64,000 bases of DNA from Fimbriosthenelais zetlandica (Eukaryota), in assembly GCA_977030845.1 (NCBI GenBank), contig OZ365115.1:29636001-29700000 (forward strand), in the 5' to 3' direction. The stretch's first letter is position 1; every line of letters begins with the position of its first letter. The position numbers and the translations under genes were made by a program. Under the pieces are notes generated by a model, which was not told where the DNA came from, did no database searches, and worked only from the letters and a program-made list of their open reading frames with translations. Shown piece by piece: positions 1,294 to 36,900 of the stretch.

Positions 1294-1778
1294 AGCCTTG
1301 GCCATCTTACTATCTATTGGTTCTCCAGTAGCAGCAAGTAAAACATTGACGTTGAGTATACTTCTGGAGACAATGGGACTTCCCACGGATGATATCATCC
1401 TATTACTTCCCTTTGACTGGATCCTGTAAGTACCTCGACAAACAATATTTTTCCTGTCTGTATAGGTTTAGCTTACATATCATTTGAGGTATGAATAATT
1501 GAATACTCGACATTTTTTCCAGGGGACGATTAAGAACCGCTGTCAATATTTGGGGTGATAGCATAGCTGTGGCTGTCATCGCTCACTTCTCAGAGGATCA
1601 ACTTCTACTCGACACGTCAGATGTCTCTGACGTCTCCAGCGTTTCTGATGACGTCTCTATTGGCATGGTGATGAATGGTTCATACAGACCATGCGACAGC
1701 ACGCCCTCTAGGCGCAAATCATATACACTAACAGTCCAAAATGAAAGTGGAGATGTGGTGAAAGTCTCCAAAGTATAA
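1294..1778 (+). CDS. SLC1A-like: SLC1/EAAT-family (dicarboxylate/amino acid:cation symporter) transporter, last two coding exons (5'-partial)
   Basis: Exons 1294-1425 and 1523-1778 are joined by a GT-AG intron in phase 2. Translation: ALAILLSIGSPVAASKTLTLSILLETMGLPTDDIILLLPFDWIL/GRLRTAVNIWGDSIAVAVIAHFSEDQ...VVKVSKV*. This matches the EAAT HP2-TM8 signature (GLPTDDI..DW.L.RLRT..N..GD). The C-terminal SKV is a class I PDZ-type motif. Upstream exons, including NMDGT, were not located in 1-1293. Confidence 0.88.
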
Positions 1779-3019: not shown

Positions 3020-6000
3020 CTATTTTTTGAAGGTAGAATGTGTATAGATTTTGTCATAAGTTTTTTGCGTGGACGGGCCTCCTTCTTCTGCCTCCGCACC
3101 TTCAGTAATATTGCTGTTCAGCATGACAGGTCCCATGCTCATTCTGGCCTTTTTAGGATCCAAAGGATGAAGGGGGAAATCTTTATTTTTATCTCTCCTC
3201 ATAATACTGTTATGATTAAAAGCGCTCATCTCAGGAACAGTAGGAGAACCGTCGTTATTGTTCAATGTCTCATTACTCGAGTCTAGGTTATCTAGCCCAT
3301 CCTGGAAATAGTTACGGAATGCAGGTTTGGTTGTGGGGTCAAAAGGCATCACACCATCATCCAAGGTCACGCTGGGGTTCTCTTGTGACGTCATCATTTT
3401 GGGTGGTGACGCGCGCATGCCCGCAGACGCTCGTGGCGTGGTTCCGTTCTGTTTGGTTGGTGGACTGTCTGGACGGCGTGGGTGGTAAGCGTAATCCATG
3501 ATGTCATCGTCCCCCACATAACGCATCTTACGGGCCCTGAAATGGGAAGAAAGAGAAGTTTGAGTATACATAAGATCTCTTACAATTTGGACACAGACCA
3601 TTAAATAATAATTTTATGGTTTGAACAGGAAATAGGCCTAAGTCTAACATGCAAACTCAATAGCAGGGTAGGAAATCCCAAGCAGCTGATAGACAGTCCA
3701 AAAGTGGAAGGCTTTGGCATGATCTCTATATCTTTCTGGGAGACAATTTCTTACAATTCAAATGTCATGGCCATGGTATATATAAGCATGCATCTTTTCA
3801 TATTTGACTGTTTAGAATCGGTAGGCCTATCACAAATATTTGAGGTCTGGCCAGGAGAGTCTGAGATATAGAGCTAAAACACATCCTGACCAGACCACAT
3901 CAAGCTGGGGTACAGTTTTACTCCGTGGGTATACAGTACTATGACCTGGTCGTCGATGTAGTAGACCGTTTGTCAACGACAGATTGGGCTGAGATTTTTT
4001 ATGCCAGTTAGTCAGGATCACATGTCTCTGATGTAGGAATTTCGACCAAATGACTAATTCACCAGTTATATATCACTGTACAACATCTGAGATATGTGAG
4101 ACACAGAATCTAGCAAGGTCCTACATACATATATCCCTGATAATATACCCCTCATTATTCCTCCCATTGACGCTTGATCCAGAGCAAGATATAAGCCTAC
4201 GTCTGAAGATATATTGATGCCCTTCAATCTAACGCTACATTCTAGCCATGGGCCATGGGAAAGAAGTTAGCAATGTTGTCAGGGTCCAAATCCGAGACTA
4301 ATTACCTTACACTTTAAAATATATACTTTAAAGTGTATGCATACATTTATGAATAAACAGCTAGCTAGGTCATATTTGTCTTATTTGTCCATAAACATCG
4401 AGGCTGAATTTTCTCACCTTTCTTTCTTCTAGGCCATACTTTATCAGAGACAAAATAGACTAGACAAATAAAATGTTAGTTAAGATGGAATGTTTAGACA
4501 TGGTACAAAAACTGGTATTTAAGATTTCAAAAAACTATTCTAAGGAAATATAAGAACTTACTTTTCCCCTCGTTTCTTTTTTATGCAGCAAGCAATGAAT
4601 ATGATGATTATCACCAACAATATTCCTGCAATACTCGCCAACACAATAATCCAAAGCTCAGCCCCAGGTCCTGAAGGCGTATATGGGGTTGTCGCTGACG
4701 ACGTCAAGTTGTCATCACCTTCAGTGTACCCGAGAGTGAAATCTGACGTTGTGGCGTCAGTATCGTGGAACGTAGTCGTTCTGGGGATGGCTCCACTTCC
4801 GGTTGTATCATTAGAAGGTGGAAGTCCTGTTGTTGTACTAAATTCGACTTGGTCTTGGATTGATGTCGTGATATTTACATCAGATATTGAACTTGTTATG
4901 TTTAATTCAGGTGTAGTTGGAGGAGTACTGGTGAACACAGAAGTTGTTTCTGTAACGTTTGCTTTTTCAAAAGTTGTCTCCTGTAGAATTGTAGTCATTT
5001 CCGTTGAGGTCATCGTAGAGTCATTGACGTTCATACCTGCAATAATATGTGTAATAATATGTTTAATTCGAATTTCAAATTCAGTTGAACTACAAATGTC
5101 AATGATTAAGCTGATACCAAATATACCTTTACGTAGATTGTAGTATTTATGCATACCTGTTGTTGCTTCTAATGAACTGAAGGTGGTAGTTGCCATTGTT
5201 GCATTCACAAAAATCCCAGGGGATGTCACTCCTATACTTAATGTCGAATTTAAATCTGATGAAGTATTGCTTTCTGCAGTCAAAATGTCTCCTACAACTG
5301 TAACATTGTCTGGTACGTACATAACATCCTCAGTAACAGTTAGTGAAGGATCTCCTCCAGGTTTTGTGACGTTTGCACCAGAGGTAACAATTGATTCAGT
5401 AGTTCGAGTTACATTAACGTAACTTGGGTCAGTAAGTAAAGGACCTGACGTTGAAATTGGAACGGTTAAAGATTCTGTTTTCAAGTCTCCTGACTGTGGA
5501 ATGGTTGCTGTAATAGATGTTGTGGCATTTTTATCTGATTCAGATAATCCACTAGTACTATTGTCTAATATTTTCCTATCTATATCACCTGAACCATGAT
5601 CTTCTGTATTATAAGTAGATGCAGTCACTGGAGTAGATTGCAAGGCCTCATCTCCTGAGGAGAAGGTTGCCCGTAGATGAGCTGTAGCTTCAGTAATTGA
5701 TCCAGTAGTTACTTTAGTACTAGTCCTATTTTCTGAAGTACCTTGGACGTAAAGATCGGAATCTACTTCTCCACTGTACTCCTCTATGTCCAGTGGATTT
5801 GATGTGGTATAGATGGTCTGTTGGGGTGATGGTTGTTTGGAAGGACTTTGCACATTGTTAGGGTTAGTAGGGATAGTAGCCGGAGGATCTGGGAGGGCTG
5901 GGACGTCCTCGTATACAGTGACTTGACAGAAGACAAGGGTGGTGAAATGGATTTGGTATACAATCCAAAGTTGTAGTGGTAACCACCGAAACCCTAAAAA

Positions 6001-23446: not shown

Positions 23447-24524
23447 ATGTCAACGACCCAGCGTAACAACAAAGGTCATGTACGTCATGGCTCTGACAAT
23501 GGTATCGACATTCAATTCCTGGCGGCGGGAAGTACCATCAACGCCCAGAAATATTCCAGTACCATCCCAGAGACAATCCGCGCGTCTGGCAACGTAGGAC
23601 ACAACTTCACTCCCTCCAATGTCCCTGGCCAGCAGATCATTTTGGATGGAGATTTCCTCCCTGCTAATTTCAGGACCCAGTCGTATGAGATTGCTAAAGA
23701 CTCGGTCCGCTTTGTTTGCCGCGGTGAGTGCTATGGACCAGCACCTAGTAAAGCTGCTGTCATCATGAGGTCTTTGGTTGAAGATACCATCAAAGACCGG
23801 TCAGCCATGATGTCACAGTTAGTGAGGACTCTAGATGTACGGGAGCGGGAACAGCTCCAACTGGTCAGAAACATCGCTAACAATATGTTTGATGATGAGC
23901 AGGTGAACTGGAGCAGGATTGTCACGCTACATGCCTTCTGTGGCTGCTTAGCTAAGTACTGTGAGCAGAGAAACCTGCCTGATTGTGCTGATGATGTGGC
24001 CATAGTTTTGGCTGATTTTGTAGTTAATCGTTTGGGGCTGTGGATAGTGACACACGGAGGATGGGTGAGTGTATAGTCCCAATAAGTTAGTTTTAAATTG
24101 ATAGCAGATGCATCTTTTAATAAAAAAATATTTTCAATAAATAATAAGTGCATGAATGGGTTGCCCTCATATGTAGTTCTTTGGGAATCTGCTTTACCAG
24201 ATCCTAGGATCAAACTCAGAGCCATGCCTCCCATGTCATCTGAATTTATGATGTTCTTATTTAAGCAATATGAACATCTAATGCTTCACAAAAGCTGACA
24301 TGATTAGTACTGACCATTTCCCACTGTTCCCATCTATGGGTGAGATTCATCCCATCATGGCTTTTCATTGCCTTTGTTTCTTACAGAAAGGCTTTGAGGA
24401 CCAGTTCCCTTCCCTAGTATTGTGGGGCAACTCTGGCATGTGGAAGGGGATCGTCATCGCAGCTTTACTATTTTTCGCTCTGGCGGTCTTCTACTCATGC
24501 ATTCGCTTTGTAGTCAGCAGATGA
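23447..24524 (+). CDS. Bcl-2-family multidomain protein (BCL2L10/NR-13/Mcl-1-like), 251 aa, isoform with proximal TM exon
   Basis: Exon 23447-24064 contains BH4-like SYEIAKDSVRFVC, BH1 MFDDEQVNWSRIVTLHAF and BH2 WIVTHGGW, with donor TGG|gtgagt at the conserved BH2 intron position. Exon 24387-24524 encodes KGFEDQF...WKGIVIAALLFFALAVFYSCIRFVVSR* (tail anchor). Orthology within the family is unresolved. Confidence 0.92.
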
Positions 24525-32600: not shown

Positions 32601-33905
32601 AAGCGTGAGCATGACATGAATCTTGGAGCTAAATACAGACGTAGATGTCAACAAATTTCACCATTCCTGATGCCGTATGTTGATGTCAGTATAGTTTTTA
32701 TTCTCTTTGTAAACTGTTGTGTCTTTAGAGATTGCTAAATGAGGTTCTTTCCTTGTATAAATCGAATGAAACGCGCACATAGTGACATAGGCCTACTGAC
32801 TATGATGACTATCCTTATCCTATCCTACTACTATGTTATGCCTATGTCCCCAGTAGGCTAGTCAGGAAAGGGAGTGAATGAATATTAGAGTCAGTTTTCC
32901 CCGCCCTGGTTATTGTTGCATAATCCTTTTGACAGAAAATATACGTAAGAAGATGCCACATATTGTTTGCCCTATAATAATGATGTAGGGCCTATGGTTC
33001 TTCTGAGCTGAGGGGTTTGGCAAAAAATGCACCATGAATGATGAATGATTAGCTTTTAGGTTTTGTCATGTCTCATGTTTTGTTTCAGTGTCATTTTAGT
33101 GAATTTTAACTGTCAATCTGTTTCGATTCTGGATTTCTTCGTTTTCATGGTTTGGATCTCAATTTGAACTTATTGGGGATTCAAAGATACATCTGAATAA
33201 AATAATTTGTTCAGTAGGCATACCGTAGGCTATCTAAATTTCTTATAAGTAGAAGTAGGCCCTATTAGATCTAATACAAAATTATATAGGCCTACCCAGA
33301 CACTATATTTTATTCGGCCTAATAGTAATAGTACGCGAGGTTATACTGTTAAAATATATTCAGCTGAACATGGTTATGGCTATTTCCCATGGCCATGCAA
33401 TATTAGAAAGGAATTCCCCTATATTGATGGTTTCAGTTCTCACGATGTGCTGTTGCAATCAGTTATTCCTCTTTGCACAGCAGGCCAGGATCGACTCTAT
33501 ATTATTCCCAGATATGTCTAATTTAGATGGAATTATTCCAATGGAAGGGGAAAATGTCGGCTTTTATTTACTTTATACGGATTTAGAGACAGGTAAGTGT
33601 ATTACAGTGCCCGGTATATACCATGACAAGGTCTTGATTGGTCGTTTAGGGCATAATTAATCAAGGAAGAGGATTATGTCTATTCCCCGTCATGTGGTCT
33701 CAAATCTTTCCTCATTATCATGTTGGTAGGTTAGTTTATGGCGATATAATCCACATTCTGATTTTACTTAAATCGCCCAAAAGCCCAGTGCTTCAAACAA
33801 GGAAGTTAATTTAATCATGAAAGTGAAATTAATCATAGACAATGGGAATCGTGTCGTCCACTCATGATTCTAATTTCATTTCACTTCTTTCCAGCAGTAG
33901 ATGCA

Positions 33906-36900
33906 ATGTCGGTTGAGGAACGTGCCAGCTGCCCAGTCCTGAGTGGCTGCTGCCCAGATGATGCCTGTAAAACCAAGCTTTACTTTCCTGCCTATGATGA
34001 CAGCATTGAATGCACCAGCTGTGGCCAGAGACACCCTAAAGAAGCCCTCAAGGACATCACAGAAGCCAAGACCACCAACGATGTCAGAAAGTACATTTAC
34101 GATCTCCTGGTCCGATACCAGAAACCGAAAAAAGGGCCAGAATCGGTCAAAGTCCTTGGGCGATCGAACTATGAATGTAAAATCCTTTCACCTATCCTGA
34201 CCAAGTATGGCATGGACAATAAGACTGGGAAAGCTCGACTCTTGTCAGAAATGGGACGTGGAAACATGTTTGATTTTGCCAGTTTGAGTGATAGAGCTTT
34301 TATGATAGAGCCTGATCAGGCCGGTGTGAGTGGGTATGGGAGAGACCACACGGGGAGCATGTCATATCTGAAGGAAACCCTGGCAGTCTTCAACTCTAAA
34401 GAAGAATGTTTTCTCCCCATTCACGCCGATGGCGATGGCCATTGTCTTGTACATGCCGTTTCAAGGGCCCTCATAGGAAGGGAACTTTTCTGGCACCCCC
34501 TGAGGGCTAATCTGAAAGCTCATATTATGCAGGAGAGAGACAGGTACATGGAACTGTTTGAGAATTACATAGACCGCAGTGAGTGGCCTGATATTATCAA
34601 GGAATGTGATCCTGATTATGTACTGTCTACCAAAGACACAATGGGGCTGAGAAACATCCATATTTTTGGACTTGCTAATGTTTTACGGAGGCCAATCATT
34701 CTCCTTGATTCAATAGAGTGGATCATGAACTCGGGAGATTATACAGGTAACCTCACTAGTTAATTCCTCCCAAATAGATTTAATTTATTTATGTGACAAC
34801 TTACTTTAGTAATTGTCCGAATAGTGTTCAAATATATAATTCAAAATCAACTCATCCAATTACTCAATTACTCTCCCTCCCTCAGTTACTCTTTACTACA
34901 TTACTCCCTCTGACACCAGTCACTTATTTCAATTATACCACACAGTAGTTTCATCCATTAAATAACGAATTATTTTTCAGGTATATTTCTGCCTGGTCTT
35001 CGCCACCCTGACGAATGTAAGAACAAGAAAGGTGAGTTAAACAAGCCTCTGTGTCTGGCGTGGAGCAGTAACGGACACAATCATTACATCGCCGTGGTGG
35101 GTGTGAAGGGGCGACCTGTACCTCGTATACCTAACTGGATGATCCATAAATGTGGGGTGTGGGGCATGTCTCAAGATCATCTACTCCAATACATAGACAT
35201 GGACGAGGACGGCTCGGTAGTCATTGGTGGTACCAAGGGAACTGGGGTAAGATGTCATTTTGAATTATGTTATTGTACTGATAATAGGGATTTCCAATTT
35301 TAATCCAGAAATATACCATGACAACTGCCTTAAAAATTAAACGTTCAGCCATCTTTAGATTTTAATGATTTTGAAGGATATTTCCCATGATTGATGTCAT
35401 AAATATTGCCCATTTTAGCATAAGTTTTTTTTACCTTGGATTACAATTGAATATCAAATTAATTTGCATCATTCTACAGGATCAGTATCTACTACGCCTC
35501 ATGCGAGCCATGGAGGAAGTTTTCCTCGAGAAACACGAAGTGGCCAGCTCACTGGTTACAGATGTACATCACTATGTGCTCAAATCAGCGGGTGAGTTGC
35601 TCACATATTTACTCACTTTCCCAATGAAATTATATATTATATAAAAAAAATATATATAAATTCCTAATTCCTGTCTTGGCAAAATCATGATGGAATGTAA
35701 TACAGTATTATCTAGGCTGTTTAATCTATTCATTTCTCTATAGTGATGGATAATTTGGTTTAATGTTTGATACATTATTTGATATAATTTCAGGGATAGT
35801 TGGTTTCTGTCCTGATGTTGTGATATCAGAGACATCCCATGCAGTACGTGAGAAGCGTTTATTCCGCTGTATCTCATGCCAGGCGCTCTCTATGATGAGT
35901 GTACCCGCCAAGGGCTTCCTACCTACTGGTCATCTCTACAAGCTGGCTATTAACTGTCATGGTAAACTCGACCCAGGCAAACGCTACTCCTTCCCTACTG
36001 AAGGTAGCAAATATTGGCATTTATATATGTAAAATAATGTACCCACTATGAGGTAGTTGAATTTTTGTTGCATTTTTCACATGGTAGTAAACCTGGATTT
36101 GCCGTCTCACTACCACAATTCAGGTACCTAGTCTACCCCTTTGGGATATATTTAAGCAGCTATAACAAATTTACCTTTGTTATTTCAGGGATAATTTGTT
36201 CCTATAGCGAAAAGCAAGATCGCCTTGTTCCAGAGAGGCTGTCATCTTGTGGATTTTGTGAAGGGTAAGTTATTGAATTTCTAATATTGCCTGGGTATGT
36301 ATTTGCTAAGTTTGTTTCATTTTACGTTAATATCTCTTGCCGTCATGACTTATTATATAACATCTACCAACAATTATGTTTCAGGACTCAGATGAGACTA
36401 GTCAATGGTGATGGTAGCGTGTGTTTTGTGAATGGGGATAGGACGAGTACACGATCCATGAATACTAAGTCTTCCAGTGGTTTCAAACTCCACTGGGAGG
36501 GAAAGGAATACGATAATATGCCCAAAGTGTAAGGACCTATTTCACAAGTGATACCAAAAATACCCAATAATATGCCTTGAACCAAAGTTGGCATACATGG
36601 TATATGCATACCTAATGTGATTTTCGGTAATTTTTTCCCAATTTGTGAATATTATGTGTGTCATTTTCATCTCAACAGGTTCCCGGTAACATTGAAATGG
36701 GGCTCCAATGTTATATCTGAAAAGGTGGTGTGGTTCGAAGATGAATCTGACCCTGAATTAAATGGCAACGCTTTCGAAATAGCGAACCAGCTCGTCCAGA
36801 AACACTTCCCAGGTTAGCTACTACAATCCTTAGATTAAGCTCAGCACCACTATCTGGTACAATGTTAAATTTTTCATGTGGAAAAGCATCTATTGCTATA

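Follow-up and report, generated by a model that had tools for sequence, protein, structure and literature searches.

Structure of the gene end

The window, by which we mean the whole stretch of 64,000 nucleotides (64 kb) that was analysed, carries near its start the two exons that are described here. In the list below positions are counted from the first letter of the window; residue numbers here and in the text are those of EAAT3 unless another protein is named.

1294–1425, + strand: exon A, penultimate coding exon; 132 nt, made up of one base, 43 codons and CT; HP2 and the start of TM8
1313–1345, + strand: HP2 tip, SIGSPVAASKT, which replaces the canonical SIGAAGIPQAG (HMMER alignments to ASCT1, ASCT2 and EAAT1)
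1415–1417, + strand: Asp of FDW, kept; the place of EAAT3 D440 and GltPh D390 (alignment and the residue map of PMC4693270)
1426–1522, + strand: intron between exons A and B; 97 nt, GTAAGT...ttttttccAG, splitting a Leu codon 2|1
1523–1778, + strand: exon B, last coding exon; 256 nt including the stop, TAA at 1776–1778
1524–1526, + strand: GGA, Gly at the place of EAAT3 D444, EAAT1 D476 and GltPh D394; first whole codon of the last exon
1527–1559, + strand: TM8 core RLRTAVNIWGD, with R445, R447, T448, N451 and D455 kept
1824–1829, + strand: ATTAAA, the closest poly(A)-signal-like hexamer past the stop (pattern match only)

On direct reading of the sequence, exon A follows the acceptor attgcAG (AG at 1292–1293) and ends at the donor CT|GTAAGT (1425/1426). 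The acceptor AG of exon B lies at 1521–1522, and the splice sites of both exons are canonical (AG/GT/AG). No alternative frame or nearby AG that would keep the reading frame was found around the two exons. Their G+C content is 0.43–0.47, compared with 0.31–0.35 in the intron and flanks. The spliced product reads ALAILLSIGSPVAASKTLTLSILLETMGLPTDDIILLLPFDWI-L-GRLRTAVNIWGDSIAVAVIAHFSEDQ... and continues after TM8 into an acidic, Ser-rich tail that ends KVSKV directly before the TAA. We take the C-terminal -SKV to resemble a class I PDZ ligand. Beyond ATTAAA, further poly(A)-signal-like hexamers occur 3' of the stop at 2670, 2816 and 2995, again by pattern match only.

The portion of the gene that is visible in the window amounts to about 128 C-terminal residues, the C-terminal quarter of the protein. 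A search of all six frames of the 64 kb, positions 1–1293 included, with the 67-protein profile described below gave no SLC1-like stretch besides exons A and B, from which we conclude that the upstream exons (carrying NMDGT of TM7, HP1 and, likewise in TM7, the place of E374, a residue tied to K+ coupling) precede the window. We also note that in the intron directly upstream of exon A (1139–1177, + strand) the 19-base sequence aagtactttagtaattttg is present twice, with one base between the copies.

Family assignment and intron positions

Exon A matches the solved chains of human ASCT1, ASCT2, EAAT1, EAAT2 and EAAT3 at HP2–TM8, with a best E value of 2e-4 (HMMER), and its alignment with the ASCT and EAAT chains has a one-residue gap in the HP2 tip. 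In exon B the second residue, an Arg, pairs with R476 in the solved EAAT2 chains, so that the Gly falls on the Asp just before it. In the residue map of PMC4693270 this place is native EAAT2 D474, EAAT1 D476, EAAT3 D444 and GltPh D394.

For a broader comparison we used an SLC1 profile built from 67 full prokaryote SLC1 ORFs, drawn from 80 metagenome loci that came from a JGI metagenome scan with the exon B pattern; these loci serve as a comparison set and are not relatives within the Gly lineage. Against the window the profile gave E values of 8.5e-5 for exon A and 4.6e-9 for exon B. The two matches are colinear, profile positions 379–421 corresponding to exon A and 423–452 to exon B, and the single skipped position, 422, is the Gly; it is Asp in all 67 of the prokaryote proteins. 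The Pfam SDF model (PF00375) matched with an E value of 0.0014 and 18.2 bits; since the scan covered a piece of only 43 residues, this score falls short of the cut-off of 27.9, which is set for whole proteins. Thus the HP2–TM8 sequence match places the protein in the SLC1/DAACS family, as does the animal gene structure with its penultimate and last exons, which the contig L001 described below likewise has.

The coding exons of human SLC1A1 end ...195, 135, (247) and sum to 525 codons (PMC2873418, supplement). By arithmetic on these sizes the 135-nt exon begins at the third base of codon 398 and the last exon at the third base of codon 443, which makes D444 the first codon lying wholly within the last exon. 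Both intron positions and both phases in the window equal those of vertebrate SLC1A1 exons 11 and 12, and the Leu codon is split as codon 443 of SLC1A1 is. Exon A is homologous to the vertebrate 135-nt exon, the difference of 132 from 135 nt being one codon lost in HP2. The exact match of places and phases with SLC1A1 makes a mis-splice reading very unlikely. It also led us to reject horizontal transfer from prokaryotes, an origin prompted by the prokaryote-like RT.VN.WGD, since the introns lie exactly at the vertebrate positions. Exons A and B are genuine and under selection, and they form the final two coding exons of an animal SLC1 gene of the EAAT/ASCT family.

Residues of TM8 and HP2

The combination of Gly444 with Arg447 corresponds neither to the EAAT type, which has Asp444 with Arg447, nor to the ASCT type, which has Asp444 with a residue other than Arg at 447. 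ASCTs lack the Arg at the 447 place. The Trp that precedes the GD of the TM8 core is common in prokaryote SLC1 proteins.

The HP2 tip SIGSPVAASKT does not fit the canonical loop [SA][IV]GAA[GA][IV]P.AG, and in 67 of 67 prokaryote SLC1 proteins HP2 reads GAA[GA][IV]P.A[GS]. Compared with the canonical loop the tip is one residue shorter, its Pro has moved beside SIG[SA], and a Lys occupies the place of EAAT3 G415. From the exon A alignment, the place directly after EAAT1 G447 in HP2 (EAAT1 L448) is Thr in the window and Val in L001.

The preliminary description of this locus had read it as the end of an animal SLC1 gene, spliced CT|G then GGA to give ...RLRTAVNIWGD. It had placed Gly at the equivalent of D444, with R447, T448, N451 and D455 kept, and had described HP2 as remodelled and one residue shorter. 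Direct reading of the sequence confirms the splice, and the ASCT/EAAT matches, the 67-protein profile and the vertebrate-like intron positions uphold the gene end. The Gly and the kept residues are as described according to the alignment and profile column 422, and the ASCT/EAAT alignments together with the 132-nt exon bear out the change in HP2.

A distant relative with the same Gly

The preliminary description had also proposed looking for the Gly in relatives, and it was found in one distant relative. An exhaustive phmmer search with exon A as query, covering 1.84 billion representatives, yielded a single true match, the exon-level ORF P0002, which is an ORF call on a 2.2-kb contig (L001) from an ENA metagenome assembly. 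The contig is animal-like. It has a 132-nt exon at 811–942 with the donor TT|GTAAGT, a 1020-nt intron and a last exon from 1963, all in the phases seen in the window. It reads ...SIGAPTMGSGVVVLIVLFKSIGLPLQDIVLLVPFDWIL-G-RCRTTVNVWGDC..., with the Gly encoded by GGC where the window has GGA, and its HP2 tip is SIGAPTMGSGV.

Over 70 gap-free codons L001 and the window share about 47% protein identity. As proportions over the same 70 codons, synonymous differences are 0.85, which is saturated, and non-synonymous differences 0.37; identical positions number 17 of 70 at third and 53 of 70 at second codon positions. Both sequences keep D440 (in FDW), R445, R447, T448, N451 and D455, and have in common FDWILGR.RT.VN.WGD. 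These divergence figures indicate that the lineage is old and under purifying selection, and that the Gly, SIG[AS]P and the loss of one residue are traits common to both sequences. An error of sequencing or reading at the Gly was considered and is rejected, as L001, with its saturated synonymous sites, has Gly by a different codon. On these codon comparisons we regard the Gly as an old, selected trait, of which one relative is known.

Past SIG[AS]P the HP2 tip is not conserved between the window and L001, and the G415 place is Lys in the former and Gly in the latter. This large difference could reflect relaxed constraint rather than a new fit.

Other searches returned little from the same lineage. 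A homologue search with the exon region of P0002 found only P0002 itself, and an alignment search that admitted full-length proteins gave, among the matches listed, only prokaryote SLC1 proteins (P0003, P0004 and P0006) and pieces of L001. The JGI metagenome scan with the exon A pattern gave no match, and the ESM Atlas feature search no meaningful match. P0001 was rejected as a relative of exon A; it is unrelated to SLC1, and its match is probably due to chance or composition. This 990-residue protein is a 13-fold tandem repeat protein (...LIGCSIGAPVAPSRQ...). Among the prokaryote SLC1 proteins, P0003, P0004, L008 and other metagenome loci of the DW[FL]LDR.RT.VNVWGD type have some 100 or more residues inserted following the third membrane segment, a region where EAATs also have an insertion, while the 406-residue P0006 is without it.

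Comparison with known transporters

D444 is described as stringently conserved in eukaryote SLC1 proteins, ASCTs included, and is assigned to the α-amino group of the substrate; R447 binds its distal and N451 its proximal carboxylate (PMC3737229). In EAAT models R445 pairs with D444 (PMC4693270). In EAAC1, replacement of D444 by Ser, Cys, Ala or even Glu leads to loss of uptake, and the neutral mutants bind succinate (PMC2151622). With Thr448 in place, neutral-444 forms of EAAC1/EAAT3 bind acidic amino acids and succinate with no steady-state transport, and EAAT3 with D444S or D444N alone binds dicarboxylates but does not transport them (PMC2151622; PMC3737229). When D444S is combined with T448A, dicarboxylates are transported and the response to K+ is lost (PMC3737229). 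In EAAT1, gate closure is helped, and the closed gate stabilised, by hydrogen bonds between D476/R479 and HP2; L448, directly after G447, is conserved in the K+-coupled EAATs, and in EAAT1 L448A/T abolishes K+ dependence.

The gene described here resembles vertebrate EAAT3/SLC1A1, EAAT1 and EAAT2 in the HP2–TM8 sequence, in the intron positions and phases of the last two exons, and in D440, R445, R447, T448, N451 and D455. The vertebrate EAATs differ in having D444 where the window has Gly, in the GAAGIPQAG loop, which is absent and one residue shorter here, and in the Leu after EAAT1 G447, which is Thr here and Val in L001. Closest among tested analogues of its TM8 are the engineered D444 mutants of EAAC1/EAAT3, in which 444 is neutral with Thr448 and R447 intact; unlike the present protein these have a normal HP2, and Gly is not among the substitutions reported in the parts of the two papers that we drew on (PMC2151622; PMC3737229).

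Two mosquito SLC1 carriers of dicarboxylates, CuqDCT and AeaDCT, are given as the sole exception to the Asp in eukaryote SLC1 proteins (PMC3737229). Like the protein in the window they are animal SLC1 proteins that have a neutral residue at the D444 place and keep R447 and N451, but CuqDCT has Asn at 444 and Ala at the T448 place where the window has Gly and Thr (PMC3737229). An HP2 change is not among the CuqDCT differences examined in that source, its analysis being of TMD8 (PMC3737229), whereas HP2 is rebuilt here. The mosquito change is recent (Culex and Aedes), in contrast to the Gly, which is common to lineages with saturated synonymous divergence. Bacterial DctA proteins, which are C4-dicarboxylate carriers, belong to the SLC1 fold family and also have a neutral residue at 444; they have Ser and Ala at 444 and 448, whereas the gene here has Gly and Thr and animal intron positions. 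The Ser of DctA and the Asn of the mosquito carrier, cited in the preliminary description, stand as given there (PMC3737229). The closest prokaryote look-alikes in TM8 (DW[FL]LDR.RT.VNVWGD) all keep the Asp.

Set against the features of dicarboxylate carriers, the residue at 444 in the window is neutral, but where those have a hydrogen-bonding Ser or Asn, Gly lacks a side chain that could donate a hydrogen bond. The Ala448 that EAAT3 needs alongside D444S is Thr in both the window and L001. We found no description of Gly at this place in an animal SLC1 protein in the literature, of which our coverage was incomplete.

Proposed function

The gene belongs to an old lineage in which Gly takes the place of the TM8 Asp that holds the α-amino group and in which the HP2 loop is one residue shorter and rebuilt. 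At the C-terminus the sodium-site residues that would be needed are kept (S-I-G of HP2, N451 and D455), and R447 would remain available for the distal carboxylate and N451 with T448 for the proximal one. The amino group would have lost its two partners, the side chain of D444 and the canonical HP2 tip, and those features of K+ counter-transport that can be checked, namely D444 and the Leu following EAAT1 G447, would be gone as well. Such a protein would most likely still bind sodium and a carboxylate-type anion without a free α-amino group, candidates being a dicarboxylate or an oxo-, hydroxy- or N-substituted acid, and would move it probably without K+ coupling. Ordinary amino acids are probably no longer carried, since the amino-group Asp is Gly and a distant relative has this Gly too; on the residues seen, recognition of amino acids has likely been lost.

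The best explanation that we can offer, with a confidence a little short of even, is that the protein performs sodium-linked, K+-independent handling of a carboxylate without a free α-amino group. The preliminary description had suggested a carrier of dicarboxylates or other non-amino-acid anions, or a protein acting mainly as a channel. The sharing of the Gly by L001 favours that suggestion in its general form. Its simple dicarboxylate version is weakened by the retained Thr448 together with the bind-only behaviour of EAAT3 D444S and D444N. As the known solutions change two residues (Ser or Asn at 444 and Ala at 448), a dicarboxylate carrier is one candidate here and does not follow from precedent. 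With Thr448 kept and HP2 rebuilt, the structural solution would differ from those of both DctA (Ser and Ala) and CuqDCT (Asn and Ala).

A more specific proposal, which is possible but to our minds rather doubtful, is that an old, conserved invertebrate SLC1 clade ceased to recognise α-amino acids in a third way, combining Gly444, a retained Thr448, a freed Arg445 and a short HP2, and became a sodium-coupled, K+-independent carrier of a non-amino organic anion. Its cargo would be of importance to these animals, for instance succinate or another end product of anaerobic metabolism, an oxo- or hydroxy-acid, or an N-substituted acidic amino acid. If this is true, the clade is a second and much older natural exception to the TM8 Asp, with a different residue pattern and a rebuilt gate; as such it would be a natural experiment on the part that this residue plays in substrate choice, gate closure and K+ coupling of SLC1 proteins. 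The clade could also represent an unrecognised route for organic-anion transport in invertebrates. In the papers that we found, the only exception reported is a change of two residues, recent in origin, by which a glutamate carrier in two mosquitoes became a dicarboxylate carrier (PMC3737229). The claim is limited in reach, since what is known of the gene here is the C-terminal quarter of its protein, together with one relative.

The main rival is a non-transporting SLC1 protein that has kept the fold and the ion sites and lost productive substrate occlusion, and that serves as an anion channel (leak or ligand-modulated), as a sensor, or as a silent subunit alongside ordinary EAATs in trimers. 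We consider this fairly unlikely. It draws on the behaviour of EAAC1/EAAT3 with neutral 444 and Thr448, in which acidic amino acids and succinate are bound and steady-state transport does not occur, on the HP2 tip, which has to close over the substrate and is both shortened and poorly conserved between the window and L001, and on the stabilisation of the closed EAAT1 gate by the D476/R479–HP2 hydrogen bonds. However, saturated divergence has left R447, T448, N451, D455, D440 and the S-I-G of HP2 all in place, a pattern more readily understood if the protein still needs to bind ions and substrate, and the channel-lining regions lie upstream, outside the window.

That the protein is still an amino-acid carrier is distinctly improbable. 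The amino group would then be held by carbonyls of the rebuilt HP2, by Ser/Thr side chains or by an upstream residue, and the Gly would retune substrate choice. This would agree with the intact R447, T448 and N451, the ligands of both carboxylates of Asp and Glu, and with an HP2 change that accompanies the Gly in the window and L001 alike. It conflicts with the stringent conservation of the Asp in amino-acid-carrying eukaryote SLC1 proteins, ASCTs included (PMC3737229), with the abolition of uptake by Ser, Cys, Ala and even Glu at 444 (PMC2151622) and with an Asp kept in 67/67 prokaryote relatives.

Least probable of all, and slight in our estimation, is a dead or partial gene. This would be a remnant consisting of the last two exons, a copy disabled recently, or an alternative pair of 3' exons within a canonical SLC1 gene that has its usual pair upstream of the window. 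In its favour, nothing SLC1-like occurs in 1–1293 or elsewhere in the window and no full-length product turned up in the protein collections (phmmer, 1.84 billion representatives; alignment search, among the matches listed). Against it, each exon has an open frame, canonical splice sites and a raised G+C content, the functional residues that can be checked are all kept save D444 and the HP2 tip, L001 has the identical architecture in intact form, pN between the two is much lower than pS, and a first intron of more than 1.3 kb is ordinary in SLC1 genes (PMC2873418).

Taking these readings together, the sequence evidence probably points to either a K+-independent SLC1 protein for non-amino anions or a non-transporting form.

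Other features of the window

Convergent with the SLC1 gene is a 193-codon open frame at 3020–3601 (− strand), for which there is no Pfam match. For two ORFs of the window, this one among them, no identical product is recorded in the gene collection. A 431-codon open frame at 4558–5853 (− strand) is rich in Ser/Thr and in N-x-S/T sites and ends in a hydrophobic stretch followed by KKKRGEK. It looks like an exon of a mucin-like single-pass membrane protein, with faint Pfam hints (Collectrin, TMEM154). A Bcl-2 family open frame (Pfam Bcl-2, E value 2.5e-22) lies at 23447–24076 (+ strand). Further along, a large exon at 33864–34763 (+ strand) encodes a VCIP135 N-terminal domain (E value 5e-63) followed by an OTU protease domain, and so belongs to a VCPIP1-like deubiquitinase gene.
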